Made by a program: the position numbers and the translations under genes
Part shown: piece by piece, positions 6,516 to 34,495 of the stretch
Numbering within the stretch: the first letter of the stretch is position 1
Layout: every line of letters begins with the position of its first letter
The notes under the pieces: model-generated
Databases searched by the model: none
What the model was told of the DNA's origin: nothing
The model's input: only the letters and a program-made list of their open reading frames with translations
NCBI RefSeq assembly: GCF_006345805.1
Contig: NW_021832602.1
Location: 230,243-294,242 of the forward strand
DNA length: 64,000 nucleotides
From: Octopus sinensis
Lineage: Eukaryota
Direction of reading: 5' to 3'

Positions 6516-8113
6516 ATGGGCAAGCTAAATCAAACACTAAACAAATATGAACGAAACAAAATTGCAGGTAAAGCCCAAGCTAATAATAAGCTCCTGGTAA
6601 GAAACGTCCCATGAGAGACCCCTCCACTGCCAAACGTCTATTAATGTACACAAAATCGAAACCAATAAGGTAAACCACTAAAAAACAATCTTCAGGGACG
6701 CCAAAGGAAAAATAATCAAGGCAGCCCCCTACCAACAGAAAACGCCAACAGGCACAGTCGCTCGAACCCAGCCCTCTAGAAGCTGGTTCGGTAAGCTTAG
6801 AGAATATATATTGGCAGGCAATACTCGTTATGTCACTCAGGAGGCCCTCCAGACCTTCCAATCTGAGATGGGGACTGCAATGTCTGACCCCTACAAGGTG
6901 GTGTTGAAACAGACTCGACTTCCCATATCTCTCCTCAGGGAGATGGGATCACAAAAGAGAAGTCACATTCTGGACAGAGAAAGCTATTCGGCCACATTTG
7001 GACCAAATTCTCAGAGGAAAAGACCAACCTTGGCAGTGGGGTCCGTGGAGGAATTGTGTGAGTCAGCCAAGAGGAGGGCTGAGACCATCGAGGACACTGT
7101 TGATAGAGAAGAGGACAAGGACGAGTCAGTTCAGGCTGTGACTAAGAAAGGACAGTCTAGGAGGATTTGGAATGAGTTATTCAAGGTCGGCAATACTTAT
7201 AATTTCAGGTGGTTGATTCCTCTGATGTAATTTTGCAAATATTGGATGCCAGGGACCCCCTTGGCACTCGTTCGAGTTATATTGAAAAGTATTTAAAGAA
7301 GGAAAAGCCGTTCAAACATCTCGTTTTTGTCTTAAACAAGTGTGATTTGGTACCCACGTGGGTCACAGTTAGAGTTGTGTGTAGTACTGTTAGAAACGAT
7401 GGGTTACTCATTTGTCTTCCCAGTACCCCACACTGGCCTTTCGAGCCAACATAACCAAGTGTTTTGGCAAGTCGGCTCTCATGCAGTTGTTGCGACAGTT
7501 CGCTAAGGTGGGTGGGATATTAACATGGTAGTTACACAAAAACCGCAAGCAGATTTCTGTCGGGTTGGTGGGATACCCGAATTGCGGAAAGTCTTCGATA
7601 ATCAATGCCTTGTTGGGAAAGAAGGTGTGCAAAGCTGCTCCCATCGCAGGGGAGACTAAGGTCTGGCAGTACGTATCGCTCATGAAGAGAATTTATTTGA
7701 TTGATTCCCCGGGGGTGGTCTATCCATCGGGGGAGTCGGAGACGGATATTATCCTGAAAGGAGTGGTCGTGTGTGTCTGACTCAGGTGTAGGTGAGGGTG
7801 GAGACTCTTGACAATCCCGATTTTTATGCCGAGGAGGTCATTCGGCGAGTGGAGAGAAAGCACCTGGAAAATGCCTATGGGGTACTCGACTGGGATTCCG
7901 AAAGCGACTTTATTGAGAAATTGGCCAATAAGACTGGAAAGTTGATTAAGGTTTGTAATCGGGAATATTCAGAAAGGGGAGCCCGACATTAATTGTGTGG
8001 CCAAGATGATATTAAATGATTGGATTAGGGGTAAATTACCTTACTTTGCACATCCTCCAAATCGTGAAGTTGTTTCCCCCACTCCGGTCGTACAAGAAGT
8101 GATTGAAAATTAA
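6516..8113 (+). CDS. GNL2: Nucleolar GTP-binding protein 2 (NOG2), 8 mini-introns of 22-27 nt
   Basis: Motifs [65 protein letters not shown] (G1), LIDSPG (G3) and [11 protein letters not shown]; ends in TAA at 8111-8113. Confidence 0.97.
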
Positions 8114-8409: not shown

Positions 8410-8625
8410 ATCCTATAAACAATGGATTCGTCGTCCATATTGCGAACGACAACAAGGAGTTGAATTCTTTTTGTAATATCTGAGCTTTCATCCACATGAA
8501 GCGCAAAAAATTCAATTTTTTTATTTGCCGAACCAAACTGCTTTCGACCTCATCAGACATATACATGATCCGTCTGCTGACCGAAGTATTTGAAATAGGT
8601 AATAAATTGAAGAGTGTCTATCTAT
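8410..8625 (-). mobile_element. Buster-type hAT transposase remnant
   Basis: LPISNTSVSRRIMYMSDEVE...FFALHVDESSDITKRIQLLVVVR. Confidence 0.65.
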
Positions 8626-8894
8626 TCCAGGTATTTACGAAAAGGTATCATGTTCTCGGACAGCTGATAGTGAGTATATGAACATTAATGGAAATGTTCA
8701 TAAAGAAACAACCACTTATTAGCCCTAGTTATCATCATTAAAATGATCACCTAAATGCAGTATCAAACATTGATCGCATTCATCCTAAGTAGAAGAAGAA
8801 ACTCGATTCTGCAAACAGAGAAATAAAAAAAATTACAAGCACACGCATAAGTAGGTAACATCTATAAAGTCATACAGTCGGAATTCGTTATGAG

Positions 8895-10128
8895 TAGGGC
8901 AACATAAGTCAATAAAGTCAACTTCAATCCAGAGTTAGACTTAAGTCTAAAAATAATGATTAAATTAAAATAAAGTCAAAAAAATGTTTATATAAAAAGT
9001 TCTTTAGGTCAATTTGGTCAGCTTTTTAGATTTTCAGGTCAATTTTTTTAATTAGGTCAATTTTTAAATAAAAATTTGAATACTATTATTTAAATCATCA
9101 AAATAAATTTAAAATAGTCGCAGTGACATTTGTCTCTTATTGTAACAAATTTTAAACTAAATTATAGTGTACTTATGCCTAAAAATAAACCTTCGGATTT
9201 TAAAAAAGCTAAAAATATTTGTGAAAAATATCCTAAAGAGTTTACAATTACACCAAATGGAATGCTTTTTTGTAAATTATGTGAGTTACATGTGACATGC
9301 AAGAAACAATTTTTTGTGAACAAACACAGGGAAATACAGAAACACTCTTCCCGAACAAATAATATATCCACAAATAAAAAACAATTGAATATTGTTCCTC
9401 CAAATTATGTCTTCAGAAATTTTGCAACAGACGTAACAGAAGCATTTGTATCCGCAAACATTCCGCTCTATAAATTGAGAAATTAAAGCTGTTTCTTACT
9501 ATGCTACAAACCTGCCAAATGTTATTCAAGTATGCACTTCCTTAGAAGGAAATTTTTTGCTCATTAAAAGAGCGAAAGAATGTTTATTTAATGAACAACT
9601 TCATGAAGATCTAACAACGATAATATCACAATATTCACCTTTATTACATTTGCTTGATGATTTAGAATCGACCATTTTACTATAAAAAAAGCATTCAATT
9701 ATTTGAAAACATTGGATTTTAAGAGACGTGTGTGGAATAAAAAATTATATTATCAAAAGGATGAATTCCAATGATATCACAAAAATTATGAATTTCGATG
9801 ATCATTCCATTTCACCTTTAGATTATTCTTTGTTGATGAATGTCAGGCAACATATTGCGCAGTAGAACGATCATCTTCGATTCTTAACAAAATCTTAACC
9901 AAGGATAGGAATTTTAAAGTGGATAATGTAAAATATTACTTAATTGTAAATAACTCGATAAACGATGAATAAAATTACTTTAAATTTTCATAAACGTAGT
10001 TTATATATGAAAATAAAGTAGTATTTTTACGGTCAATTATTTGGTCAATTTTTAAAATTTTAAGGTCAATTAAATTGACTTTTTAAGGGCAATTTTTATT
10101 TTTTTAAGTCAATAAAAATGTTGCTCTA
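8895..10128 (+). mobile_element. CGGBP-like hAT element, internally deleted
   Basis: TIRs tagggcaacat/atgttgctcta and 8-bp TSD gttatgag (8887-8894, 10129-10136). BED-like LFCKLC...KH and EAFVSANIPLYKL; C-terminal CAVERSFS remnant. Confidence 0.85.
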
Positions 10129-10209
10129 GTTATGAGCCATACTTCGAAGATGTTATGAGCCACCTAAAAATTGCTAAAAACTAAATAGTTTTCAATATAT
10201 TTGATTTAT

Positions 10210-11400
10210 GCATTCTCCCCCCTCCCCCCAACTCGAGGTCGGTGTCCGAAATGGCTGCTCATTCGATTCGTTAATGAATGGAATCGTCCGAGGAGTTTAT
10301 CATAATTAAACTCGACGTTTCGAACACAGCCGGAGTGCTGTCGCGAACTGGTTTCCTTCCTACATCTTTTCGTGGATCTCTCATATGCTTCCCAAGCATC
10401 CTTATGTTCAACGATTTTCCTATCTCTTCGTCCATCTGGGTCCACCAGGGTGATCCCCTGAGCCCCCTACTTTTTGCTTTGGGCGTTAATCGTATCGCCC
10501 ACTCTGTCGGATCCCCTATTAACATTTGGTACCCGGATGTCGCAACCATTTGTGGTTCTCCCAATGTTGTTTTCACGACCTCCGCTCTATTTTCCCTTCC
10601 CTCTCGGACATCGGCCTATCTATAAATGCAGACAAATCCAAAATTGTGAACATTCATCCCAATCCAAGTATGTCATCGCCGCAATTTCCATATACCAATT
10701 GTTCTTTCAGACGTCCAAATTACATTGTCTGGAAAAATCTTAAACTTATCCAAAATGATCGAGAAGCTTAGAGACATCGAACCCCATGTGGCTCTTTTTC
10801 TCTTTCGAAACCACTTTTCCGTTCCCAAGATCCTTTACACGTTAAGATGTGCACCATGTTTTCACAGAGATCACCTTCTTTCCTACTCTGACAATATCAT
10901 CAGGCTCGGCACGCGCTCATTTTGAAATCTGGCCTTTTACGATCCCGGCTGGACTCAGGCATTTTTACCTGTGGGCTGGGGCGACCTTGGCATGAGATCC
11001 TATTCCTATCTGGCCCTTTCAGCGTTCCTATCCGTTCACCCTGCTTCTTGTTCTCTCTCAGACATCGTTCTCAGGAACCTTCCCGAACGGAAATTGTCTA
11101 AAGATTACTCGGCTGCTTGTGGTCGGTTGGAACCTTGGTTTGGTTCGAGGCTGCTCAATTCTCCATTCATCCAACGGCAGTGGGACGAGATCGTTTGTCA
11201 GCCGACTTTCGAAGACCTGGCTTCTGTTTCTAATCAACACTGACTCGTTTGCTTCCATGCAGGTTGCTGTCAAAGCAGCGGTATTTGGCTAAAGACTCTC
11301 CCTCTCCTCTCCATCGGATTAGTCCTTTCAACATTTCGTGTAGTAGTCATCGATTGAATTCGAATGGGATTGTTTCTTACCGACTTTGACATTTTCAACT
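10210..11400 (+). mobile_element. Degraded CRE-like (RLE-type) non-LTR retrotransposon RT region
   Basis: QGDPLSPLLFALG...NIWYPD, LRCAPC and GWTQAFLPVGWGDLGMR, with frameshifts. Confidence 0.75.
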
Positions 11401-11519
11401 TTAACTGCTTGTTTTTTTATCGCTTTGTTTGATAAATAGCTTCCGCGCAATGCAGGACTGTCCCTTGAAATTTTCAATCAAAAATTTTACCAAACATTTT
11501 GATCCATCTAAAAGTTGGA

Positions 11520-11687
11520 AGTCAATAGACATCATCATTCAAGCTTTAATCCCCTTTTTTTCTATTATCCTTCTCGGGTATTTGGCTGGCAGCTTCAAAA
11601 TTTTGGCAATGGTCAAAGTGATTGTTTAACCTGCCATTGCTTTCCTTTTATTATTATTAGCACTGTCATAGGAACATAATGTAATTT
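11520..11687 (+). pseudogene. AEC/PIN-like (auxin efflux carrier family) transporter, N-terminal remnant
   Basis: IIIQALIPFFSIILLGYLAG matches the AEC first-helix pattern (LLPxFxIIxLGYxAG). A possible C-terminal remnant lies at 14692-14870. Confidence 0.5.
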
Positions 11688-14682
11688 AAACTAATTAAGT
11701 TCCCACATGTGCCACATATGAGACTATCTTTTCGGTCATAATTTTCCATGATGTGCGGTTGTATGCTATACTCCTGAGAGTATCTAGGTCGTCTCCATTT
11801 TTCAGTTGTCTTTTAACGCGTTGTAGTTCTTTTGAGATTACAATAGGTAATGTATTTCGTGGGCGTCCTCGGGACGCAGATCTTTCGTCCTTTGCGTAAT
11901 ATGATTCCATTGCCCAGTTAGCATAAACATCCTGGTCGAGTCTTAGAATGTGGCCCAATAGGCGCCAACGTGCTTCGGTAATGTCCACACTGACGGGTCT
12001 GCTGTTGCAGATATTGTATAGGGTGGAGTTCTTGATTTTCTTTGGCCAGTTGATGCCAATAAGAATTCTTAACTGTCTTCTATGGAATGCATCAAGAGAT
12101 TTTGATTCAGACTCAGATATTCCCCATGTTCCTCCGTTGTACAAAAGTATGGGTTTAATAAAAGCATTGTATAATTTGGCACGTAAGGCCGTTCCAACCT
12201 CGCGGTTTCGTAGCCAAGTGGTCCGCAGTTTGTTAAGTGCAACAGTCGATAGCATCTTTCTCCTCATAATGTCTTCACTATCTCCTAAAAGAGTTCCAAC
12301 TTTTTTCGAGTTTCGCCATTTCGTCTGTTCTATTTGCCTCCCGGTTGATTGTTACATATTCGGTTTTTTCTATGTTCACTTTTAAGAACCATTTTTCCAG
12401 TGCCTGAGGAGCAATGTTCAGCAGTTCTTCGAGAGTCGACTTATCATGAGACAAAAAGTCTACATCGTCGGCATATATCACTTCAGTTATTGAAGTAGAC
12501 TTCACTAGTTTTCTCAGATCTCTTAGTGCCGCTTCAAGATAGACAATGAATAGTACAGGTGATATTGAATCACCTTGGGGCGTTCCAATGCTTGTTTTGA
12601 AAGATCTTGATTGTACGGGTCCGATCTTCACCGTTAACTCGGTGTCTATAAGTAGTGCTCGAACCATTCTGATCGAGTCATTGTCAAGATAGTTTTGAGG
12701 ATCTCCATTAGCTTGTCTCTGCGGATTGTATCAAATGCCCTGCTCATATCAATGCCCAATATTGTGGTCGCCATTTTAAATTTCTGAGATATGGCACAGA
12801 TCCATCTATGTCCCCATACTACATCTGCAGTTGATCGCCCAGGCCTGAATCCACTTTGGCTAGCCGACAGATATTCATTAACAGGGTCCTTAATACGTTC
12901 CAGTGTTACGAGCGAGAAGATTTTCCTTATTGTGTTCAAGAGTATGATTGGGCGAATGTTGTTAAGAGGACCTTGCGGCTTGTTGGGTTTTTGGAGAGGA
13001 ATTAGCGTTCCTTTCCCAATAGGCGGTATGGTATTTCCATGGAACATCTCGTTCAGGAGATTTGTGATTATAGTTGAGATCTCCATTGGGGAGTACTTTA
13101 TCAATTCACCGTTGATGTTGTCTGGACCCGCCGCACGGTTGTTTTTTAATTTTTTATAGCCTTCAAAACTTCAAGGTGTGTTATTTTGTTGTTTAGATAA
13201 CGTTCTTCACCCTCATCGAGAGCATCGGCCCTGCCATTGAATAGTATTTCGAAGTGGTCGGCGATTGTATTTACCATTTCGATTGGGTTTCCAATTGTTT
13301 TCCCATGTTCATCGTGCACAACCAGTTTTGTTTTCTGTTGTCGTCGGCGTAGTAGTCTGATGGCTGCGTACATTTGCGCACCATCCTTTAAGTCTTCAAC
13401 TTCTGATATTCGAGAGTTTAATAAAGCTTTCACGTATTTAAGATTTTCCTTCTTGATTGTTCTCGATATTTTCCTACGTTCTCTTTTGAGTTTTTCCTTT
13501 GCCTCCTTGTCGTTGGTGTTTTCAATTTTCAGTTGGATGGCTTTTTGTTTTGTTGCCATTTCGGCAACATTTGGATTCAATGGGTTTGAGTGGTTTCTGA
13601 ATGCAGTCGTTCCAATGGTTTCCGTTGCAGCTTTGTGAATAAGTTTTTCTAATATATCCCAGCTTTTGTTTGGGTCTTTTACCGTTTCTGTTACTTTTAG
13701 GTTTTCGATGATTGCCTGGGAGTATTTTTCCTTGGTAACATCTGATGTAATCAGTTTTTCCACTGAGTATCTAATTCGGTTTGATTCATTTTCTTTTGAA
13801 AGAGGCGATCCAAAAATTCTTTTCAGTCTCAATCGTGCCACAATGACTTTGTGATCGCTCAGTGTAAGTGCCCCGCATATGACCTGGCATCCAGCAATCG
13901 ATGTTTTTCTTCTTGTCTACAGATGATATAATCGATTTGATTATAGATGTTGACGTACTCCCCATTTTTGTTTCTTCTAGTCCCGGTCCACGTGGTTTTA
14001 TGACGTGCCGCATGAGGAAAGACCGTATTGCATAGCAGTAGCTTGAATATGCTGCAGAAGTTCACAAGCATTTCACCTGGTGCATTTCTTATCCCCCGTC
14101 CGTGTCTGCCCATGAACACTTCTTCACCACGGCCTTTGCCTGCCTTAGCATTCCAATCACCGGCAATTAGTATAAGGAAGGATGTTTTTATACTCGTGTA
14201 GGTCTTTGATAGCATGTGATAGAAAGAGTCTAGTTCATCCACGTTCTTCTTCAGTCTTCCACTTTGTGGGGCGTAGACATTTATAATGCTGATTATTCGA
14301 TCCGTGTTGGTCAAAGTTTTTTGTCTCAGTTGTAGTACACATATGCGGTCGTTCACACGGTAGTATTTGTGAATTGAATTCCAAAAGGTCTTATGAATGC
14401 CAAACCCCTGCCCATAATGACGTGATTCTGATGGAAGGAGAATGATTCGATACTCGTTGTGTATCTCATCTAGCCCGCCTTTGACCTTCGTTTCTTGAAA
14501 GCATCCGATAGTTGCACCATATGCATTCAGATCCCGGCATAGGATTTTTCGCTTGGATAGGTCAGATAGTCCTCTGACATTGAATGATAGCAAAGTAAAA
14601 TCTCTTTGTAGCCTCATATGTGATTAAGACTTTGTGCAATAGAGTTGCGTCACTAACTCAACCAGAGTGCTTTCCTTTTCTT
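11688..14682 (-). mobile_element. Near full-length RTE-like LINE (APE endonuclease plus RT), frameshifted
   Basis: EN motifs SFNVRGL, QET, AGDWNAK, NQIDYI and SDH; RT motifs GIDMSRAFD, PQGDSISP and YADD. Flanked by atgtaattt at 11679-11687 and 14683-14691. Confidence 0.93.
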
Positions 14683-14691
14683 ATGTAATTT

Positions 14692-14870
14692 CAATGTTGA
14701 CCAAACATGTGAATCGGAGAATTTTTGCTGAGTGCATTGCAAACGACTGTGATCTTGCTGTGCTTATTGACTACTACCAAACCTATTTGCAAAAAGCTTT
14801 TTTCAATTCTAATCATTACAGTTACAACATTGCTCATTGTAATTAAACTGGGTTTGAGGCTTTGAGGATC
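14692..14870 (+). pseudogene. Possible C-terminal remnant of the AEC-family transporter
   Basis: FLLSALQTTVIL...SILIITVTTLLIVI, a hydrophobic end resembling the AEC LxAxPTA...xxTLLSI pattern; needs frameshifts. Confidence 0.3.
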
Positions 14871-14897
14871 AATTCATTCTTGACAAGAAACATCAAT

Positions 14898-15220
14898 TCA
14901 TTCTTCAATTTTTGCTGCTAAAATAAAATCGCTTTCACTCAGATCGTTAATTTTATAATTCCAAACACGCAATTTGATCATTTCCCATGCTAAGAAAATA
15001 TTCGGATGATGCTTTTCTTTTTTCCAACTTTTCTTATCACATTGATAAAAACTAACCCATCCTTAAAGTTTTTAAACTTATACTATCTTTCCAAATAATG
15101 TTCTTCAATAATTTTCAATCCAGAGTCCAATTGCATATAAAGAGGTTTAAGTACCTCTGCCTGTAATGTTATATCCTCCGAAACACAGGGTACACATTTT
15201 TTCTCTGTTAAATTATTAAT
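14898..15220 (-). pseudogene. phhB: Bacterial-type 4a-hydroxytetrahydrobiopterin (pterin-4a-carbinolamine) dehydratase
   Basis: NNLTEKKCVPC...EEHYLER*YKFKNFKDGL...EKEKHHPNIFLAWEMIKLRVWNYKINDLSESDFILAAKIEE*. Shows the HHP motif, the CxPC N-terminus and the LSESDFILAAKI terminus; one stop, frameshifts, no introns. Confidence 0.85.
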
Positions 15221-15765
15221 TGGACCGTTTGTGAAAAAACTTCTGTTTCGTCCCAAGGAAAAACGACAGGAAATCGCTTGATCAGCTTGAAACCTTCGCC
15301 TTTATCATATAAATTGAAGGATAACTGATACTTAAAATTATTATTTCAATTGGAAATGGTTTGTTTGAGTGACCTTAAAATCTCTTCATCTTCTAAAAAG
15401 GTTCCATAAATAAAAATAACTCTTGAATCTGGCCATTTAGTTTTGAAAATATCTGTGCATTTAAAAGAAACGTTCTTGATATGATGCCCCTTAGCTACAT
15501 GCTCTGGTAATTTTACAAACTGACAAATCCGTTTAATTCCAGTAAATGGCAGCTGAAAAAATGTCCTAAGATACTCCACGCCCTCTATCTAAACCCAGTT
15601 CAAGAGTTTTGATACTTGTCTCTATTGCCATCTCTTCAAAAGTCAAAAGAGGGGGTTTTCTATAGGTATACAGTTCTTGAGCTTTTTGTTGCCTTAAAAA
15701 AGTTTGCTGATCCGGTAAGGACTACGCATGATATATTTTTTAATAGGGAATAGTCAATCCCACCG
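15217..15765 (-). pseudogene. Bacterial-type class I SAM-dependent methyltransferase
   Basis: RSPYRISK...LYTYRKTPLLTFEE...LELGLDRGRG (degenerate motif I)...DIFKTKWPDSRVIFIYGT...ISYP...FKLIKRFPVVFPWDETEVFSQ; frameshifted, intronless. Confidence 0.7.
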
Positions 15766-15769
15766 TATC

Positions 15770-15990
15770 CGTATCCCCAACAAAGTAAAGCCTCTTATTT
15801 TCACGTCTATATCACTTAAATTGACGACATAACCAGCCCAAAGCGTTTTATTCTTGTCAAAAAGACTTATTCCAGAAAAGTGTTGATTAGGATCAGCTGT
15901 CATCTCCAGAGTTAAAGAGGGCTCGTCTTCAACATCAAGAGAGACAATTTCCCACCAAGCAAGCTCGGAATAATCCAGAACAAGCTGTGA
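15770..15990 (-). pseudogene. MBL-fold metallo-hydrolase fragment (NAPE-PLD/RomA-like)
   Basis: SELAWWE...PNQHFSGISLFDKNKTLWAGYVV...RLYFVGDT; the last motif requires a frameshift. Confidence 0.8.
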
Positions 15991-16569
15991 ATAAGATTTT
16001 ATAGAAACAAAGAATAAAGTTCGAAGACAATGTAATTAAAGTTGATTTAGGTGTTCAGTCAATCGATTTTGATACTTACTTTTCATTCGCGTGAGTTTGC
16101 CGAAAAAAGCTTTACATGCATAAGATAGTTAAAATATGTAAAAAAAATTTCACCATGAAAAGTTTACTGTACGAAACAAACAGAAAAAAAGTACAGAGGC
16201 TCTTAATTCTGTTATTTTTATTTATTTTTCAAAAGAAAATTTATTCGCCTTTCATAAAAACATGAAACCTTGAAAAAGAAAATTATTCAGTCAATTTAAA
16301 AGTGATACAGTGGAACTTCATATTGGGGCGACCTCGGATTTTGGCATCCTCAGGTTTTAAGGCACTTTGAATTTCTACTGGAAGTTTCTTTCTATCAAGA
16401 ATAAATTCTTTATAAGATAAATCCCGTTATGAGGCATTTAACCTTATATATAGTTTTTAGTACAATTTTTTAAATTTTATTGTATAATAAATAATTATTA
16501 TATGTTTTTGTTGATATGCCAAAGAGAATTTCTGTCAAAGACAAATTAGAGATTGCGAAGGGTTTAGAA

Positions 16570-19015
16570 CAGCGGTTCTCAACCGCGGCCCGCCACAATT
16601 TTGGTGCAACCCGATTAAAATTATAAAAATATATTAAATATTTTGCACATTAATGTTTAAATAATATTGTTTGTGATGTCTGATAAACGTGTTAAACGAA
16701 GTAGAAAAATTATTCATGAAAATCGTGCATTTAACCCCGAATGAGAGGAAAAATTTTTTGTTTTTGAAGAAAATGGTAACGCACATTGCCTAATTTGTCA
16801 TTCTGTCATACGATGTCTTAAGACATATAATGTCGAGAGACATTATTCGAAACATTCTTCTGAATATGATTCACTTCAAGGTGAATCAAGAAAAATAAAA
16901 TTTCAAATCGCAAACTACAAACGAATTTGTTAAAACAGCCCCACTTATCAAGATCCGTAACATTAGCTTCATACAAAATAAGTATCTACTTGCAAAAAAT
17001 ATGAAGCCATATTCAGATGGAGAATTCATTAAGCAAGCTATTCATATATTTACAGAAGAATGTTGCTCTTCAGAAATTAAAAAAATTGGTCGAAACTTAC
17101 AGCTTGGCAATGATACAGTTTCTCGGAGAATTGAGAGCATATCTGACGATCTTCATTACCAGCTACTCACTTAATCCAAGTTTTTCGTACACTATTCTAT
17201 TTCTCTTGACATCACTAAAGATATCAGTAATACAGAACAAATGGCCGTGTTTATTCGGGGTGTCATGCCTGACTTCAAAATTTACGAATAATTTCTCTCG
17301 TTACCTAGTTTTCATGGTTCTACTAAAGGAGTTTATATATTTCGCGAATTTCGCGATTGTCTTGAAATGGCACATTTGAATCCTTCAAAAATGTTTTCAA
17401 TTGGTACAGATGGATGTCCTTATGGTTGAATGGAAAACTGGATTTCAAGGTCTCGTAGCTGGATGGCGAGTAGATGATGAGTTGAGTCCTGTGATTTGGC
17501 ATCACTGCATCCTGCATCAAGAAAATTTAGCCGCGAAATCTATGAAAATGGACCATGTTACAAAAACGGTCATTTCGATCGTAAATTTTATTCGATCCCG
17601 TGCTTTAAATCACCGGAATTTCAAGATATTTCTCGAGGATGTTGACGCCGAGTATGGAAATTTGCTTATGCATACAACTGTACGATGGTTGAGTCGGGCA
17701 GCATGTCTAAAAAGGTTATATAAATTTAAACTAAATCGCATTTAGATTTTATGACCTTCTCCCGGAGATTATGCATTTTATTGACAATAAGATATTTTAT
17801 CCTCAGCTTACTGATAAGGAGTGGATTACAGATTTAGCATTTATGGTAGATATTTCTACGCACCTTTCAATTTTGAATACTTCTCTGCAGGGTAGGGGCA
17901 AACTATGTCATGAATTGTACGGAATGGTTTCTTCATTTATCGAAAAACTACACACCTTTGGAATAACAAATTGAAAGTAGAGTTTTACCATTCATTTCCC
18001 AATACTTTCAAATCACAGGGAAGATGGATTCTATGAAAAATATATCTGCGTTATTAGTGACTTAATCGATGAATTCGAAACACGTTTTAATGATTTTAAA
18101 GAAGCTCTACCTATTATGAAAATATTTTCGTCACCTATGGAAACAGATGCTGCACCGCTCCATACATACACTGGAACTAATTGAAATGCAGGCAGATTTA
18201 CAACTTACCGCGCATTTAAGTCAAGTGAACTATTGGATTTTTGGGGTCGAATTCCACAGTGGAAATATCCGAACTTGGTCGATATGCTCAAAAAAATGCA
18301 TCAGTCTTCGGACCAACGTATACATGTGAAGCTCTTTTCAGCAAACTTACGCAAATAAAAACAAAGTATCGAAATCGATTGACTGATGGACACCTAATCA
18401 ACTTTTACGCACATCGTGTTCGACGTTTATTCCCTGTTTCGACAAAATAATAGACGCCAAACAGAATCAAGTCTCTGCATTGATTTTTATTACTTAATAA
18501 AGCCTTCTTTTCATTAATAACATAAAATATTTTTTGTGCGGCCCGCAAAGATATTCTTAATTATCGATTTGGACCATGAGCTAAAAAGGTTGAGAACCCC
18601 TGGTGCAAATCGACGAGTGTAAATTTTTTCACAGAAAGTACCATCAAGGTCATTGGCGATCAGGCCATTGGGTGGAATAGACAGGGAAACTAGAAAGTGC
18701 TTTTTTGAAGAAGTTGCTGGTTCTTTTTTCCATTTATCCTTTAGACAGAACAGCGGAAACACTTAATGAAGTTATCGTTCGACGCGTACTTCCCGGCACC
18801 CATATCATTACTGATGGTTGGGCAGCCTATAGTGGGATTTTTACTCCCTGTTTCGACAAAATAATAGACGCCAAACAGAATCAAGTCTCGCATTGATTTT
18901 TATTACTTAATAAAGCCTTCTTTTCATTAATAACATAAAATATTTTTTGTGCGGCCCGCAAAGATATTCTTAATTATCGATTTGGCCCATGAGCTAAAAA
19001 GGTTGAGAACCCCTG
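16570..19015 (+). mobile_element. Buster/SPIN-like hAT transposon with a duplicated right end
   Basis: TIRs cagcggttctcaac/gttgagaacccctg; TSD gtttagaa/ctttagaa (7 of 8). Transposase remnants HCILHQENL, HTTVRWLSR and TYTCEALFS. Confidence 0.9.
18603..18844 (+). mobile_element. Merlin/IS1595-family (ISXO2-like) transposase fragment
   Basis: RKYHQG...GGIDRET and DRTAETLNEVIVRRVLPGTHIITDGWAAY. Confidence 0.75.
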
Positions 19016-19389
19016 CTTTAGAAACTAAAAACCCTGTATACTCGTCATCTTTGGAACTACGGAAGATTTAATAGGCAAGAAATTAATGCCGGCCATTCAT
19101 AACTTAAAAAGAGAAGGCCAGCTCCCAACAATTTTTGTTTGTTGTGGCTTTGCAAGAAAAGAAAAGACGCACAATGTTTTTCGAGGAGAAATGAAAGACG
19201 ATGTCAATAAACACTTTCATGTAAAGCCAATTGATGAAATAGTTTGGAGGAACTTCCAAAACCAGGTTTTTTATGACCAATCTGTATTCGATAACGAAGA
19301 AGGTTCCATGACCACTTGTGCGAGAAACTTGCAACGATAATATATGGAAAATATGTACCGGATAAGTGGTTCTACACCGAAATCACACA

Positions 19390-20340
19390 TCTTATTCCCA
19401 AAAAAGCAGAGAGATAAAAATGGCTCCATAGAGCGTTGCATAAACTTACAAATCATACGGGAGGGCCAGGATAGAAAGAGCTGCTGGTACTAGAGAACGT
19501 GGGACAAAAAAAGAGCAAAATATTACTGTTTTCCATTGGAATTGACTTCCTAAAAAGCTAACAAATACCCCAATAAAGCAACTCACAAGCAGAGAAATTG
19601 CCGAATATAAAATAATCTCTACAGTCAGTGAATGTGCTATAAATCCCAAAATCTGACAACAAAAAAGAATGATAAATAAGAAAAAAGGTAACCAGATTTG
19701 CCTTCTTTCAAAATCAAATAGCCCATTGCATTAAAAGCGATCCATTTCTCGAAGCGTTAAAGCAAGAGATATGACACCCATATAACCATTCAATAAATCG
19801 TTTCACAGAAGTACAAAATGGCAAAAGGTACAACAATAAGACTGCTGACTAGAAAAGAACGATACGCAAGATCAATTTTAAGAGTGATGTGTACGAGGTA
19901 AAGAACAGATAGAATATATGATAGGTCTACCAAACACGTAAAGAGGCAGCTATTGCTCATAAAAGCTGCGCCAAAAACTAAATGGGTGAGATATTCCGAG
20001 ACAGACCCAAGAATTAAATCAATGAGAAAGCATACGATAGAGCCACTTTGAAGAACTTGAAAATAAAAATAGATCGAATTAGCGTTGCTGATGTTTCAAG
20101 GTTTGGAATTTGTAAAATACGTGGTGGGATTCTCTTAGTTTCAATTGGGATAGGACTCGAATTTTTAACAACTTGATCGTTAAAATTTTTAATTTCTAGG
20201 ATCCCATCAATTAAAAGAAAGAGAATGAGTGGGACTTTGTTAAAAGATTGGATGGCATTGAGAGGAGTGATTTGATGTAAATAACCAAGCGCAATCCCAA
20301 AAATAAGAATTTTTTTATTATCCATGCAAATTACGAGATT
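19390..20340 (-). pseudogene. NhaP/CPA1-like cation:proton antiporter remnant, bacterial-looking
   Basis: RIPPRILQIPNLETS, YFCET..LNGYMGVISL and VFVSFLGSQFQWKTVIFCSFFVPRSLVPAAL...LPYDL*VYATLYGAIFISLLF. Resembles the CPA1 WFGPRG motif region; stops and frameshifts, no mini-introns needed. Confidence 0.55.
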
Positions 20341-20894
20341 GTGATTTCCATTAGAATCTGTTAGGTAGATCTTGTCGTTAATCTGTATGCAGGCATCTTT
20401 TTTGATAAATTGCTATTATACGTCACACCATAAAATAGACAAATGCTTTAATAACAACGCGTGTATTTGAATCCATACTTGTATTGAGATAGATTGTAGA
20501 ACATTAAAAGTGTTTTAATCATTCAATTAAATGCTCTTTGAATCTCGAATTTTTAACAACTTTATCGCTAAAATTTTTAATTTTTAGTACTTTTTAAAGA
20601 AAGGATGTCAAACATGCGGCCCGCAACAAAAGTACCGTGAAGTCCGATTTTATGTTTATAGAATACAAAAATCATTTGTATTTTTTAAAATATAAAATAT
20701 TTTTAATAATTAGTATATTGTAATTTTTGTTTGAGAATTTCACATGTTTCTTCTGGAACTAAAAAACGGTGTTTGAACTCGGAAAATGTTCCAACAATAG
20801 TGACAGCATCTCCGTAAGGATGCTAAAACCTTTGCAGACGTAGTGAGGAATTAGTTCCATAGTCCTTCTGAATACGAACCTTTTAAGTAATTAT

Positions 20895-21746
20895 TAGGGC
20901 AACCAAAAAATTGCACTTTTTAATAAAAAAAATTGCAAAAATGAATTTTAAAAATTGTAAAAAATTGCAAAAATAATTTTTTTTAATTGTAAACATTACA
21001 TTATGCAAAAAATTAACGATCCCCACTATTGAATAACTTAAAAAAAACAACAGTAAATGAGTCTGAATGGTATTAATTTTATATTTTGATATTTCTTTAA
21101 CATTTAACCTGCAAGATGATTCAGATGGCAAAGGATATGTTTCCTGCTCAAAAAGCCGTATGAGGGAAGGATGTCTGATTTTATAAATTGGTATGTTTGC
21201 CTCCAAAAACGCTTGTGTTACTTTGATCCCCCAATCCTTTCGAGTATCCGTTATCGCCGAAAGAAATGTTTGTGAACTCTGAGATTAATTTGTCCATTCT
21301 ATAAATTTAAATTCAAAGAAATACTGTGTGCTTTTAAATGTTTTTTTGAAGAACGGTGCGCATCAACAAAAAATTTTGTGTCACACCGTACAACAGTTGA
21401 GCAATTGGAGCAAAATAATTCCCTTCACTGTCAATAACAAACTCGGGGAATTTCTTTGCATAAAATGAAATTTTCTGTGACACTGTCCTTTTACCCATTA
21501 CAACAAACAACTAAAACACGTTTTAATAATCTTTTACTTATAATTATATTATTTTTTAATAAAAAATTTTTTTTTAATTTAAAAAAATTGCAAAAAATTG
21601 TAAAATGATTACAAAAAATTGCAAAAAATTGCAAATTTAAATCGAATAAAAATATAATTAAAATTAATGTCTATTCATTACTTTATTATTTATCGAATTT
21701 TAATTAAATTATATTTAATTGCAAAAAATTGCAATTGGTTGCCCTA
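20895..21746 (-). mobile_element. CGGBP-like hAT, non-autonomous
   Basis: TIRs tagggcaacc/ggttgcccta; TSD gtaattat (20887-20894, 21747-21754); EANIPIYKIRH remnant. Confidence 0.85.
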
Positions 21747-23704: not shown

Positions 23705-26204
23705 TCAAATTTGACCCAAATGATTTTCTGAGGATGGAACACGCATTTCACATTCAGCTAAAAACAAAAGAAGGTCGTCATGTTCATTCTTCAAATGTTC
23801 ATAACACAACCTCAACTGAACAGCCTCCTCCTGCTTTCTATCACTTTCACACTGAACAGCATAATAAGCAGAATTCCATTTCTATCACTTTCACACAAAC
23901 ATACTACCGACAACTCGCATTGTAGTGAACGCAGCTGATCCTCAAGATAGCTAATGTGACTGGCCATCCTCTCCATTTCGGGAATCTTCCCCAACTCGGT
24001 TTCCTGTCTCTGAGACTTTTTTAAAGCATCGATCTCCGTGTCCTGCAATGATCAACAGAATTACCTTTTCTGCAATGATTAAAGAATAATATTCTGTCAG
24101 CGTCTGTTCCTGAACGGAAATAACAGTTCTGGGAATAGACGTGTCAATCGATTCAAAATCCCCTAAAGTAATAAACAACGATAAAACCTCTTGATCGAGC
24201 CACAAATCTTAAAAATTGAGGATCGAGTGAAAATGACTCGGGGACGAGACTTATGTTCGATGCCGAACAAGACAAAAACAAATCCGAACAACAAAACAAG
24301 TCCACTCGATCCAAAAAACATTGAAATGAACCGCATCCACGCACAAGAAAATGTATTATACTCTCTTTGGTAAATTCGGGTACCGTATCTTGGTTATACA
24401 CCAACAAATAAGCCAGGAGAATCGAAAATAATCCTGTCATTGGAGAATCAGCCTCCCCACTGCAAACATGGCCAATCAACTAAAATAATAATTTAAAGTT
24501 TACAAAATTCATAAAATTTTGCATTTGAAGTACACAGTGAGTAGTCTTGGCAGACTGAGCAGTCCACGTGGATAACAACATGATCATTCCGCCGGATACG
24601 AGAAGGGACAAATCCTACAATAAAGATACCTTTCAACCTTCATTAAAATCTCAGCACAATGGTACAAAAGTAGTGTTGGAGGAAAATGGGCACTCGGGGA
24701 GACCTGAACTCTCAGCAGATCGTCCTTCTGGGATTCCTCCCCCAAACAGCTCATAATCACAACAGAAGATAGAAACACGGACAAATAATCATTACTGAGT
24801 AGTCCCCCACATAAAACACGCCCAATCGAGCCACCACCACTTTTTATAGTCGACGTGGGCAGGAAAGTTTTTATTACGGACTCTCTCCTTTTCTGGTTGC
24901 TATCAAAATATGCTCGCAGACAATTAAGAATCCCAACTCTGACTTGGCTACTCCGACTGGTTTCCATCATCCACGTGGTTAAAGTGATGACCAATGGTCT
25001 ACTTAAAAAGAAGAATAATACTTGCCAGAAAGAGGCATAAACGAACTTTCCAATACTTCTTGACAAAATGCATTTCCTCGAACTACATCTGTCACTACTC
25101 CTAAACACTACGACTAAATATGAAGCCAAATACATCCAGAAACAGATCCCCAGGTAAATCAGGTCGGAATGTCAATTCTACGAGACTCTTCAACAACCCA
25201 GACTTTCCGATATATTCCTGAAAGCGAATAATCGAATGAGAAGTGTTCCTTCTATTCACAAGAGTTCCTACAACCTGGAAATAAGACTTTAAACAACTTT
25301 GAGCAAAAGAAGCAGACAGACCGCATTGGTTTCGTTGATATCACTCAACGAAGAGAGGAAGGACGTAAAATCCTTAAGCGAAGGCCCCTCACAGAATGCC
25401 AGTTTGTTAGAAGAGTGGTTGATTAACAAATTTAGAACAAGCAAAAGAGCTTCCTCAATGACAGTTCCTTAGGAATAACACATTTATATCACCTCCAGTG
25501 ACAAATCCCTCTAATTTGATGATATTTACTGCACGCAGGAATCCGTTGTTGAAAACAACAAGTCTTTTGACGTCTCTGTCTTCGATTGTGAGCTTAGTTA
25601 GGAGTGAGAGGGCAGCACATCTGAGAAAGTCCCACTTATCATCCAATAGATCGGTCAAAACAGAAAAAATTGTGGTTGAATCGGCCAACATGAGTTCAGT
25701 CAATTGAGGACAGAAATCCACAGCTAGAGAATGAAGAATCTGAAGGCTATATCGAAGAACGTTTTTCTCCGGACTCTAAGCAGTCAGTGATTAGTTTTAC
25801 TGTGAAGAAATCCATCAAAAAACTGAGTGTTTGAGGAGAATAGAGGACTCTTTTTTTGCTGACCATTTCCTCATTATGCTCAGACATGGTTTCGTAAAGT
25901 AGTTTTAAAGAAAGAGACAATACTTCGTTGTCCTCTCTAAATGTAGAGTTAGTGAAGTACCTGTGTTGTTTGAATAAGTCTATGATTATGTCAATGTGCT
26001 CAGGTGTAATTAAAGATGAGTATTTATTGGTGAGAGTAGCTAAAGACTTGAGGGAGTCTCGTATATCTTGGAGAAGGGTTGAGGTTTTAACTCTGTTGAA
26101 AAGGTTGTTGATCTTAAAATGGTGAGAAGGGGTTATACCACTTCCTTGGGTTCATCTTGCTGCTCGTGGGGAGTTTTACTCCATAGATTTGCCATCCACG
26201 ACAT
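23705..26204 (-). CDS. USO1: General vesicular transport factor p115, about 12 mini-introns
   Basis: Spliced motifs are STLLQDIRDSLKSL, LTDLLDDKWDFLR, LVVFNNGF, GGTVIEEALLLVLNLL, DVVRGNAFCQ and the C-terminal NEHDDLLLFLAE; TGA at 23705-23707. Confidence 0.92.
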
Positions 26205-26309
26205 CTGAATATTTTCCACCACGTCAAAAAGATTACGTGTTATAAATATTTAAAAATTTTATATTAGAAAAAAAAGTCCGTAAAGAATTAAATAAAGAAT
26301 AAAGTCAAT

Positions 26310-27559
26310 TTAAAGGATATCGTCTTCAAAAGGAACCTCATCAGGAACCTCATCAGGAACCTGTTCAGGACCAACCCTGCGAATCTTATAGTTCTTGTAA
26401 AGACCACTGACTAAGTCAGTCACACATAGATCGGTGGAATTATTAGAAATCATTTTCAAAGCAAAAACCCCATCTTTCATTAAAACATTTTCCACAAATT
26501 CTCTGAGAATAGAATATAAATCTCCTTCATCAAAAAGATCATCTCGAATGTGTTTTCTTATGTATTGAACACTGCTATTTGTAGACACCAAGTACCAACA
26601 CCACTTGACAAGACTGTAAGCGTTGAAGCAGACTATCATGACCAGCCAGAACCAGTAGAAGCAAAAAATAGCCTCAGAGAATAAATTTATAGGAAGCACA
26701 CATTGCACTGTGTAACGATGTCCTTTGATTTCATATCCAACTTCCCGTACACGCAAATCACAATAAGTGACTCTTGGAAAATAGTAAGAATCAGCATTTG
26801 GTTTCCCAGAATTAAATTTGTGGAGTAATTGAATTCCATAGAAACTAATTTCCCCACTCGATAGCAGCATGTCTGTAAGAACGCACTGAACAACTGTGTT
26901 GACAAAGTACATAATTTTTGTAAAAATATACAACCGACAGAGGTAACGGTCATATTTTTTACCGCCACAAAATATAATTGCCATAATTTCTTTTATAATA
27001 TCTAGCTTGTTTGATTTATCCCACCGCCTTCTCATGTCAAAATATCGGTTAAAATACTCCGTCATTAATTTAATGATCTCCTCTTTGTCCTCAGTGTTAC
27101 CTGCGTCGATATACTTGTTTGCCGCTCTGATCATGCTGTTAAGGTTAAGTCCGCTTTTCTCATTATTTGCTCTCCAAAATAGGCATGGGATTTGATAGAA
27201 AAGAGCCAATCCAAGCAGAATGAAAGGCATCCATTGATAATAGCGAAGTTGAGGTTTAAAATTTAAATCGTCGGTTTCAGGAATATGTTGGTCCATGGGA
27301 ATATTATATGTGTTTTTTACCCAGCAAAACTTTTCAGTATAAATAACATAATCATCTTAATTAAAGAATTTATTTGGTACTAACATATAAATTGTGCTGG
27401 AGACCAGCATTGGATTGTAGTTCCGACATATTCATAGGTCGTAACTACAACTGCAAATAAAATCAGAAGCCAGGATGAATAAGTATGATTAAGACGATCA
27501 GTTCTGTCGTCGTCTGTTCGAGCATTTACAACGTTTTTGACTATTTCATACAAGTCCAT
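26310..27559 (-). CDS. inx: Innexin A (2 exons, 29-nt intron)
   Basis: DDRTDRLNH, IQCWSPAQF, FCW, YYQWMPF, FPRVTYCD, CVLPINLFSEAIFCFYWFW and DGVF. Confidence 0.96.
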
Positions 27560-34008: not shown

Positions 34009-34394
34009 TTAGCTCGTCTTATCGTTGAATGCACTGAAGAAGCTGGTCAAGACCATTTCCTCATTATGCTCAGACATGGTTTCGTAAAATAGTTTTAAAG
34101 AAAGGGACAATACTTCGTTGTCCTCTCTAAATGTAGAGTTAGTGAAGTACCTGTGTTGTTTGAATAAGTCTATGATTATGTCAATGTGCTCAGGTGTAAT
34201 TAAAGATGAGTATTTTTTGGTGAGACTAGCTAAAGACTTGAGGGAGTCTCGTATATCTTGGAGAAGGGTTGAAGTTTTGACTCTGTTGAAAAGGTTGTTG
34301 ATCTTAAAATGGTGAGAAGGGGTCATACCACTTCCTTGGGTTCATCTTGCTGCTCGTGGGGAGTTTTACTCCATAGATTTGTCATCCACGACAT
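34009..34394 (-). pseudogene. USO1: Truncated duplicate of the USO1 5' end fused to unrelated sequence
   Basis: Matches 25861-26204, then runs on as VLTSFFSAFNDKTS* to a stop next to the hAT. Confidence 0.85.
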
Positions 34395-34495
34395 CTGAAT
34401 ATTTTCCACCACGTCAAAAAGATTACGTGTTATAAATATTTAAAAATTTTATATTAGAAACAAAAAGTCCGTAAAGAATTAAATAAAGAATAAAG

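Follow-up and report, generated by a model that had tools for sequence, protein, structure and literature searches.

The question raised by this locus is whether a cluster of broken, bacterial-looking genes between animal genes is genuine nuclear DNA and, if so, which bacterium it came from and which animal received it. The window (the whole stretch of 64,000 nucleotides analysed here, taken from an Octopus sinensis assembly) had been read in the original prediction as carrying a fossil bacterial chromosome fragment of five genes from position 11520. Our analyses indicate that positions 8608-20308 are very probably non-functional, neutrally decaying chromosomal DNA of Simkaniaceae (Chlamydiota), inserted in an animal nuclear genome. 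The five listed remnants (AEC transporter, phhB, methyltransferase, MBL hydrolase, and NhaP-like antiporter) were all present, with Pfam, tblastn, and blastn matches far beyond chance, but the list was incomplete: the block starts at 8608, and nine bacterial genes have left remnants in it, namely def, ispG/gcpE, the AEC transporter, phhB, a methyltransferase (MT), an MBL hydrolase, zwf, a MIP scrap, and a CPA1 Na+/H+ exchanger. Thus def, gcpE/ispG, zwf/G6PD, and the 83-bp MIP scrap had been missed. The nine remnants sum to about 3.1 kb and lie between the intron-bearing animal genes GNL2 and USO1, arranged as follows.

6682-8110, plus strand: GNL2, left flanking host gene (NGP1NT and GTPase domains; Pfam NGP1NT 3.7e-39)
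8608-8874, plus strand: def (peptide deformylase), C-terminal half and 23 bp past the stop; 2 stops, 1 frameshift (frameshift-aware alignment)
11321-11446, minus strand: gcpE/ispG N-terminus, codons about 5-47; 2 frameshifts; tblastn E=5e-8
11447-11524: preserved bacterial intergenic spacer separating gcpE from the divergently oriented AEC, inside a continuous blastn match to L146
11525-11649, plus strand: AEC (Mem_trans) 5′ part, codons 1-29, a 609-bp internal deletion at 11606/11607, codons about 236-250
11638-11649: left copy of the LINE target site duplication (TSD), TGCTTTCCTTTT; identical 12-mers flank the LINE
11650-14667, minus strand: LINE (APE and RT) inside the AEC remnant; Pfam Exo_endo_phos and RVT_1
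14668-14679: right copy of the LINE TSD, TGCTTTCCTTTT
14668-14877, plus strand: AEC 3′ part, codons about 249-315; 2 stops, 3 frameshifts; tblastn match, 70% identity in the alignment
14904-15220, minus strand: phhB (pterin-4a-carbinolamine dehydratase, PCD), nearly full length; 1 in-frame stop, 1 frameshift
15220-15763, minus strand: SAM-methyltransferase (MT), codons about 33-221; 7 frameshifts; member of the conserved chlamydial MBL-MT-PCD cluster
15769-15990, minus strand: MBL-fold hydrolase, codons about 161-234; tblastn 64%, alignment 79%, blastn 87.8%
15996-19022: host repeat nest, replacing about 12.1 kb of donor sequence
19032-19373, plus strand: zwf (glucose-6-phosphate dehydrogenase, G6PD) N-terminus, codons about 20-114 of the donor-like gene
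19402-20308, minus strand: CPA1 Na+/H+ exchanger in three pieces; 3 stops, at least 2 frameshifts, internal deletion
19918-20000, minus strand: MIP/glpF-like scrap of 83 bp inside the exchanger remnant; L148 9498-9580, 90.4%, E=3.5e-26 (blastn)
24587-26151, minus strand: USO1/p115-like, right flanking host gene; Pfam Uso1_p115_head 6.2e-9

The def remnant scored 31.1 bits for Pfam Pep_deformylase (cut-off 22.8), with 58-72% identity to def of Simkania sp. by blastx and 85.0% DNA identity to the metagenome contig Ga0180433_10000305 over 273 bp. For gcpE, the frameshift-aware alignment gave 80% identity, and a blastn block covering gcpE, the spacer, and the AEC start (11327-11606) corresponded to L146 18179-18464 at 85.4%. 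The 5′ part of AEC reached 79% by tblastn, its sequence beyond the deletion (11607-11654) matching L146 19074-19121 by blastn, while a block from the 3′ part of AEC through the methyltransferase (14668-15763) was 84.5% identical to the donor-like contig. phhB scored 39.7 bits for Pfam Pterin_4a (cut-off 26), with 76% protein identity to the donor-like L002 protein. In a search of 5.8 billion proteins, the MT remnant (E=1.4e-48) matched two proteins only, at 58% and 49%; in the frameshift-aware alignment it was 72% identical. A 408-bp deletion took the 3′ end of MBL together with the 5′ end of MT. zwf was recognized by Pfam G6PD_N (57.7 bits, 3.3e-15), with 69-71% identity to Simkania sp. and 86.7% by blastn to L145 13793-14076. 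The exchanger matched the Simkaniaceae contig L148 at 87.7-90.0% DNA identity (blastn), its intact homologue being a Pfam Na_H_Exchanger protein (8e-25), and the source gene of the MIP scrap on L148 is a Pfam MIP gene next to the exchanger.

A Chlamydiae-like donor had been suspected from the motifs of the methyltransferase. Database comparison sharpened this suspicion, as the best matches were bacterial and syntenic: on sequence identity and gene order the donor is assigned to the Simkaniaceae (Chlamydiota), a placement that we regard as settled. At the DNA level the remnants were 84-90% identical to contigs from two sister metagenome samples, and six genes, gcpE-AEC-phhB-MT-MBL…zwf, kept the order and orientation that they have on a Simkaniaceae metagenome contig (L002/L145). 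The contigs encoding both MT-matching proteins carry MBL-MT-PCD-AEC-gcpE in the order and orientation of the window, and the zwf remnant is collinear and in the same orientation on the same donor-like contig. This environmental lineage is represented by Ga0180434_10000379 and Ga0180434_10000199 (JGI 3300017991), k141_2192059 (ENA ERZ27256773), and Ga0180433_10000305. The donor lineage thus still exists in environmental metagenomes; its genes are intact and under purifying selection, whereas the copies in the window are broken. Among genomes, the best match was "MAG: Simkania sp." (NZ_OZ244056.1), and the exchanger homologue was named Simkania negevensis; both belong to Chlamydiota, Simkaniaceae. 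The MAG shares the conserved MBL-MT-PCD-gcpE cluster and has zwf at a distance of 16.5 kb, on the matching side and strand, but lacks AEC between phhB and gcpE, where the window and the environmental lineage have it. In a maximum likelihood tree the window was sister to the donor-like contig with 100% support, on a branch of 0.34 vs. about 0 for the donor. Concatenated protein identity of the window was 76% to the donor-like contig, only 63-64% to the more distant Simkania group (Simkania sp. and S. negevensis; L004, L012/G001, L013/G175), and 39-51% to ten further genomes from the same order. It is by the nearest named genomes and this concatenated identity that the metagenome lineage was placed in the Simkaniaceae.

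Whether the block entered at once is less firmly answered. The remnants derive from no fewer than three stretches of donor chromosome (def; gcpE to zwf; MIP-exchanger). A screen for more fragments had been proposed; two further remnants lie on the small contigs C9061 and C8697, and both belong to the very 12 kb of donor sequence that is absent from the window. In the Simkania sp. genome, homologues of all remnants fall within 142 kb of the 2.43-Mb chromosome. There, neither def nor the exchanger is collinear with the gcpE-zwf block, and def is inverted; therefore we only infer a single insertion event. The reading that several Simkaniaceae insertions occurred independently over time, instead of one large fragment that was scrambled later, is a real possibility, if the less probable one. 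It would explain this disorder, and also why the C9061 and C8697 remnants overlap each other in donor coordinates; yet such overlapping copies could be haplotigs or orthologous loci of two co-occurring dicyemid species. All remnants are equally diverged from the donor-like lineage (84-90%), the two dispersed ones are precisely what the window lacks, and for four loci to fall within 142 kb of 2.43 Mb by chance we estimate a probability of about 8e-4 (4f^3). We therefore continue to prefer a single large fragment.

The original prediction placed the fragment in an animal genome, which stands; the animal, as judged from sequence features, is probably not the octopus itself but a dicyemid mesozoan, its scaffolds having been assembled together with those of its octopus host. 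This call is based on the size of introns, a duplicated and diverged gene, and the distribution of repeats. Mini-introns in the host genes of the window, reported before, were confirmed for GNL2, USO1, V-ATPase a, three innexins, and an HSP90-like gene; those of GNL2, given as 22-26 bp, measured 23, 24, about 23-29, and 22 bp, with GT-AG borders. Introns of Dicyema genes are likewise ultra-short and uniform, with a mean of 26.2 +/- 1.9 nt (PMC2222250). Dicyema japonicum was taken from Octopus sinensis, and its genome holds 49% repeats at 36.7% GC (PMC6736024); like the recipient, it is described as having ultra-short introns of about 26 nt, repeats including LINEs in about half of the genome, GC in the mid-30s, highly divergent proteins, and Octopus sinensis as host (PMC6736024, PMC2222250). 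Even the phylum of the recipient, let alone its species, is inferred, and the likeness to D. japonicum is one by published description. A second GNL2 lies on the chromosome-size contig C19; it is 51-53% identical, and its exons are 2.3 kb apart, i.e., separated by kb-scale introns. Among the best 40 candidates per search, the LINE and hAT families occurred on small contigs only. The closest named innexin was a RefSeq protein of O. sinensis encoded on a contig of 246 kb (59%), all others reaching at most 38%; no dicyemid sequence was found in the collections searched, and innexins outside the assembly were at most 38% identical.

It is unlikely that the insertion, while real, sits in the octopus nuclear genome, with C9073 being an unplaced octopus scaffold rich in compact, fast-evolving paralogues. 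The chromosome-size contigs of the same assembly do carry octopus-like genes, and the nearest innexins with a name carry the annotation Octopus sinensis; these "octopus" innexin relatives, however, likewise lie on small contigs. We know of no introns of 22-26 bp in cephalopods, and such lengths match Dicyema. Moreover, the single-copy gene GNL2 is present again on C19 with kb-scale introns and about 52% identity, and no chromosome-size contig carries any of the near-identical LINE copies (at least 47) or of the scored hAT copies. The evidence thus favors a dicyemid recipient.

As judged from the assembly alone, the remnants appear to be physically continuous with host nuclear DNA. The clearest sign is the LINE within AEC, for which a TSD had been claimed and was confirmed: its ends, set by sibling copies, are bordered by a perfect 12-bp duplication made of AEC sequence, and with the flanks rejoined the AEC reading ...VKVIV*PAIAFLFLCNFNVDQT... 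is restored. There are at least 47 copies of this element, 97-100% identical, sharing the 3′ end but truncated to varying extents at the 5′ end, and all on small contigs; the label RTE is that of the original prediction, the domains scored here being generic Pfam ones only. The LINE is young and the latest transposable element insertion in the block. Host elements had been taken as signs of both integration and ageing; as the LINE is very young, it shows the former and not great age. Host repeats adjoin the MBL and zwf remnants, and the nest between these combines pieces resembling hAT elements, a Merlin-like scrap, a fragment of 130 bp in inverted orientation, and a tandem duplication of 414 bp, every part having copies of 80-99% identity on other small contigs. 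The earlier hAT and Merlin calls correspond to weak, sub-threshold Pfam matches (zf-C2H2_12, 25.6 bits vs. 27.3; DDE_Tnp_IS1595, 22.6 bits vs. 27), and a hAT TSD, searched for in the nest, was not found. The inverted repeat of 130 bp stems from a fragment of a second copy, not from a pair of terminal inverted repeats. When these calls were checked, no pogo remnant was found.

Each remnant is truncated and carries stops or frameshifts, amounting to about 19 frameshifts and about 10 stops. Differences between the window and the donor-like sequence were spread evenly over the three codon positions (13.8/12.0/13.8%, chi-square p=0.66), whereas two living relatives used as a control differed by 16.2/6.7/54.2% (p=2e-42). 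At codon positions 1 and 2, 88 changes fell on the window branch vs. 8 on the bacterial branch, and changes from GC to AT outnumbered the reverse (118 vs. 45). About 0.15 substitutions per site have accumulated since the transfer, regardless of codon position, accompanied by numerous small indels, three deletions of larger size (609 bp, 408 bp, and about 12 kb), a short templated insertion, and the insertion of host transposable elements. Because the changes are codon-even, biased from GC to AT, and nearly all on the branch of the window, they indicate neutral decay after transfer.

This decay, together with a LINE bounded by a perfect duplication of bacterial gene sequence, argues for real integration, and with the synteny it supports the original view of a bacterial chromosome piece truly integrated and then broken by host elements. 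Contamination or an assembly chimera, i.e., a bacterial contig with long-read indel errors joined to eukaryotic sequence, is highly improbable. The assembly evidently holds at least one non-target organism, and the frameshifts do resemble long-read errors; yet they are not assembly noise, since the host open reading frames (about 350 aa) and the 3-kb LINE (99-100% identical to its siblings) are intact and attest to a low error rate on the contig. Nor would a chimera account for a eukaryotic LINE with a perfect TSD inside a bacterial gene, for in-frame stops that arose by substitution, for codon-uniform substitutions biased from GC to AT, for deletions of 408-609 bp, or for an assembly with no intact gcpE anywhere. 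That one or more transferred genes were domesticated and function in the animal has a negligible probability: the zwf piece forms an open frame of 103 codons, but it represents about 95 of 513 codons, all remnants are truncated with stops or frameshifts, and substitutions are blind to codon position.

We conclude that the window holds a further case of transfer from a bacterium to an animal nucleus, comparable to the Wolbachia nuclear transfers ("nuwts") of arthropods and filarial nematodes (PMC5541319, PMC3849323, PMC5429809). As in the window, nuwts are nuclear DNA of invertebrates that came from an obligate intracellular bacterium; they are multi-gene fragments in bacterial order and mostly neutral fossils, broken by indels, deletions, and host transposable elements and sometimes duplicated or dispersed (PMC5541319, PMC3849323, PMC5429809). 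In contrast to nuwts, the donor here belongs to the Simkaniaceae, a chlamydial family, instead of the alphaproteobacteria, a dicyemid is the probable recipient, and no living symbiont was seen alongside. Numts and nupts have the same history of insertion by end joining, scrambling, neutral decay, and a shift in base composition towards that of the nucleus; these, however, derive from a resident organelle, whereas DNA from a bacterium can arrive only through an infection or symbiosis, which may have ended. A present endosymbiont, which had also been envisaged, found no support in the assembly: a gcpE probe of the whole assembly recovered this remnant only and no intact copy. Assemblies are usually decontaminated. 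In the literature searched, we found no report of a bacterial symbiont of dicyemids or of a bacterial transfer to them.

A plausible history would begin with intracellular bacteria that lysed and whose DNA reached a germ-line nucleus, where end-joining repair may have inserted it, as in transfers from Wolbachia to its hosts. The DNA could have arrived as one large piece or as several in a burst, and deletion, scrambling, and partial dispersal would have followed. If the recipient is indeed a dicyemid, this would imply a past association of a Simkania-like bacterium with dicyemid germ cells, in which it would once have lived. For a wider reading we hold the balance to be even: that dicyemids carried, and may still carry, a heritable Simkania-like symbiont of their germ cells; that at least 140 kb of its DNA entered the nucleus and now persists as scattered fossils on several scaffolds; and that this would be the first transfer of chlamydial DNA to an animal germ line, recent enough for the donor lineage to be recognized, almost unchanged, in environmental metagenomes.

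Contig C9073 of the Octopus sinensis assembly is 294,242 bp long (the assembly comprises 2.72 Gb in 13,516 contigs) and the window represents its final 64 kb. The following animal genes were placed within it:

46-1116, minus strand, V-ATPase subunit a
6682 to about 8110, plus strand, GNL2
24587-26151, minus strand, USO1
26313-27356, minus strand, innexin
34499-35548, minus strand, innexin
38831-39814, minus strand, innexin
56784-58616, plus strand, HSP90/TRAP1-like gene

A USO1-like piece together with an innexin forms a duplicated block (25750-27356 and 34012-35548, about 8.2 kb apart), and the innexin at 38831-39814 is a third copy, diverged further than the two in these blocks. ORFs of one repeat family, with a common motif (...EAF[VL].ANIPLYK[LI][RK]...) and no Pfam match, are located at 9127-9483 (+), 20886-21284 (-) and 30378-30746 (+); two of the three bracket the bacterial block in opposite orientations.

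Between GNL2 and USO1 we observed unique stretches with matches to bacterial genes. Pfam alone recognized phhB (Pterin_4a, 39.7 bits), encoding the pterin dehydratase PCD, and the G6PD N-terminus encoded by zwf (57.7 bits). The exchanger pieces and the AEC transporter N-terminus by themselves gave no Pfam or NCBIfam match; they were identified through intact homologues. When the methyltransferase (MT) remnant, with X at stops, was compared with 5.8 billion proteins, just two matches were obtained (58% and 49% identity). Both are encoded on Simkaniaceae metagenome contigs in the order MBL(+), MT(+), PCD(+), AEC(-), gcpE(+), of which the window order gcpE(-), AEC(+), PCD(-), MT(-), MBL(-) is the mirror image. 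The proteins of one such donor-like contig placed all of the pieces in a tblastn search of the window and added the gcpE N-terminus at 11321-11446. For a whole-window blastx, the chromosome of the more distant Simkania sp. was joined from 20-kb pieces and all its ORFs were used as the target. This search recovered all the remnants and revealed a peptide deformylase (def) remnant at 8609-8831; no further bacterial pieces were found in the window under either strict or lax settings. Weak blastx matches at 3.1-3.4, 7.5-7.7, and 56.8-58.3 kb proved to be kinase-like, GNL2 GTPase and HSP90-like host genes. The five remnants of the original prediction (AEC, phhB, MT, MBL hydrolase and an NhaP-like antiporter) were all recovered by tblastn and blastx, but its list was short, lacking the G6PD N-terminus, gcpE, def and a scrap of a MIP gene. 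The PCD-MT-MBL stretch occurs once in the assembly, and no gcpE was found in the assembly beyond the window remnant.

The proposal of a Chlamydiae-like donor was borne out by several lines of comparison. Among species-representative genomes scanned for the methyltransferase, a match came from 'MAG: Simkania sp.' NZ_OZ244056.1, where MBL-MT-PCD-gcpE is present without AEC and zwf lies 16.5 kb off on the MBL side, its strand agreeing with the window. The remnant described as NhaP-like matches a 384-aa Na_H_Exchanger protein of the same genome, a homologue of which carries the name Simkania negevensis in the public record. On the extended metagenome contigs zwf is situated 12 kb past MBL, where it is collinear with, and oriented as in, the window. 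The MBL hydrolase-SAM methyltransferase-pterin dehydratase cluster is conserved across the chlamydial order, in at least 10 genomes (L002/L145, L005, L012-L021), often adjoining gcpE; its methyltransferase gives weak DOT1/PCMT-like matches.

The relationship to the donor-like contigs extends to the DNA level. Identity is 85.4% for 11327-11606 (gcpE start, intergenic spacer and AEC start), 84.5% for 14668-15763, 87.8% for 15769-15988, and 86.7% for 19032-19317, and a separate match covers 11607-11654. The exchanger remnant is 88-90% identical to a different contig from this metagenome. The def remnant, which scores above the Pfam cut-off, shares 85% identity with a sister-sample contig, and the match extends 23 bp beyond the stop. 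In a concatenated MBL+MT+PCD tree the window and the metagenome contig form a pair with 100% support, with terminal branch lengths of nearly zero on the bacterial side and 0.34 for the window. The donor lineage persists in public metagenomes at near-ancestral sequence, and therefore the symbiont or its host can be sought directly and the donor is potentially recoverable.

Frameshift-aware alignments to the donor-like proteins gave identities of 80% for gcpE, 70-79% for AEC, 76% for PCD, 72% for MT, and 79% for MBL; values against the more distant Simkania sp. proteins were 63% (zwf), 59% (def), and 50% (exchanger). Together these alignments contain about 19 frameshifts and some 10 stops. In a comparison of 499 aligned codons, differences between the window and donor-like DNA amount to 13.8, 12.0, and 13.8% at codon positions 1, 2, and 3, whereas two living relatives compared over the same codons differ by 16.2, 6.7, and 54.2%. 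Of the 96 changes at positions 1 and 2 that were polarized with Simkania as the outgroup, 88 belong to the window branch. The absence of a third-position excess suggests that the living lineage has hardly changed since the transfer, from which we infer that, in bacterial terms, the transfer was recent. The raw difference is 13.2%, equivalent to about 0.146 substitutions per site. GC-to-AT changes outnumber AT-to-GC changes (118 vs. 45), and the GC content of the remnants is 34.9%, as compared to 34.6% for the window and 40-42% for the donor-like contigs. The uniform 0.15 substitutions per site offer a rare direct readout of the neutral mutation spectrum of the recipient animal, which is strongly GC-to-AT. 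Larger lesions include the loss of 609 bp within AEC and of 408 bp across the MBL end and the MT start. Within the exchanger remnant lies an 83-bp piece of the adjoining MIP/glpF-like gene (19918-20000, same orientation), which in the donor is found about 1 kb upstream; the scrap resembles a templated insertion of the kind left by error-prone break repair.

True integration, as originally argued, is supported in the assembly by a host LINE (11650-14667, with APE and RT domains) inside the AEC remnant. Its ends, set by sibling copies, have the 12-mer TGCTTTCCTTTT on both sides, a perfect target site duplication (TSD), and joining the flanks without the LINE restores the AEC reading; the bacterial DNA was hence already chromosomal when the retrotransposon inserted. 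An imperfect similarity of about 40 bp flanking the LINE was considered as an old, diverged TSD and rejected, as the sibling-defined ends give the perfect 12-mer. The family counts at least 47 members, 97-100% identical, all 3′-anchored and with differing 5′ truncation points, and is very young and probably active. Being young, the LINE does not serve as the evidence of ageing for which it had been taken. It has a short (TAA)n-like repeat as its 3′ tail.

The 3 kb between MBL and zwf, which stand in place of 12.1 kb of donor sequence, consist entirely of repeats having copies elsewhere. The hAT and Merlin fragments reported previously persist as weak matches, and the pogo remnant was not located in the window. 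A 135-bp inverted repeat (15996-16129 / 18312-18448) was considered as the terminal inverted repeats of one hAT element and rejected, its left arm being an inverted fragment of another copy, and no 8-bp hAT TSD was found. A tandem repeat with a 414-bp unit occupies 18426-19015 (about 1.4 copies, 98-99% identity); it holds a Merlin-like (DDE_Tnp_IS1595) scrap and stops 5 bp short of the zwf remnant.

A screen of the assembly for further fragments, with 19.9 kb of a donor-like contig as the DNA probe, recovered the window pieces and two more Simkaniaceae-like remnants:

C9061:137884-138523, 87% identity to the donor-like contig
C8697:567479-567942, 84% identity to the donor-like contig

Both cover the pyrG 3′ / ruvX / nadA 5′ region, within the 12 kb absent from the window, and they overlap one another in donor coordinates. 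In Simkania sp. homologues of all the window remnants lie inside 142 kb. The origin of the two extra remnants in the missing 12 kb, together with this clustering, favors, short of proof, one large or clustered transfer that would later have been fragmented.

As to the recipient, several observations argue that C9073 is other than cephalopod DNA. The GNL2 introns are GT-AG and only 22-26 bp long, and a second GNL2, on contig C19 at 42.6 Mb, is 51-53% identical, with exons 2.3 kb apart. HSP90-like relatives are divided between small contigs and chromosome-size ones, and every scored copy of the LINE and hAT-like repeats is on small contigs. Introns of Dicyema measure 26.2 ± 1.9 nt (PMC2222250), and for Dicyema japonicum, taken from Octopus sinensis, the genome size is 67.5 Mb, the repeat share 49%, with LINEs present, and the GC content 36.7% (PMC6736024). 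Because of the short introns, the divergent second GNL2, the HSP90-like split and the small-contig placement of the repeats, taken with this literature, we infer that C9073 is probably a scaffold of a dicyemid, assembled together with its octopus host. Many small contigs of the assembly seem to derive from a second, probably dicyemid, animal whose introns measure 22-26 bp. HSP90-like stretches at C8299:1005-1412, C9300:507362-507769, and C12469:6702-7109 have equal scores and 44% identity to the window gene, which suggests redundancy among the small scaffolds, in the form of haplotigs or of more than one parasite species. Among named proteins, two RefSeq entries labelled 'Octopus sinensis' are most similar to the innexin, with 59% and 48% identity; they lie on contigs of 246 and 428 kb, and all other relatives show at most 38%. 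XP_029657666.1 'innexin unc-9-like [Octopus sinensis]', on the 245,893-bp contig, may belong to the parasite. As the public octopus assembly appears to hold many parasite scaffolds, some of the RefSeq proteins listed under 'Octopus' may come from dicyemids, a point of relevance to comparative cephalopod work.

To our knowledge, almost all documented cases of symbiont DNA in animal germ lines involve Wolbachia or one of a few insect symbionts. Wolbachia-to-host nuclear transfers, most pieces of which are neutral fossils (PMC5541319), are the closest known phenomenon to the bacterial block. The literature searched contained no account of chlamydial DNA in any animal genome or of a bacterial partner of dicyemids, and no prior report of dicyemid-chlamydia, dicyemid gene transfer or Simkaniaceae-cephalopod links. 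A chlamydial donor and a dicyemid recipient, if true, would widen the range of both. Since the germ cells of dicyemids develop within another cell, an intracellular bacterium would have an obvious way into the germ line. The remnants would then be the first molecular sign of a bacterium partnered with dicyemids, which are among the simplest animals.
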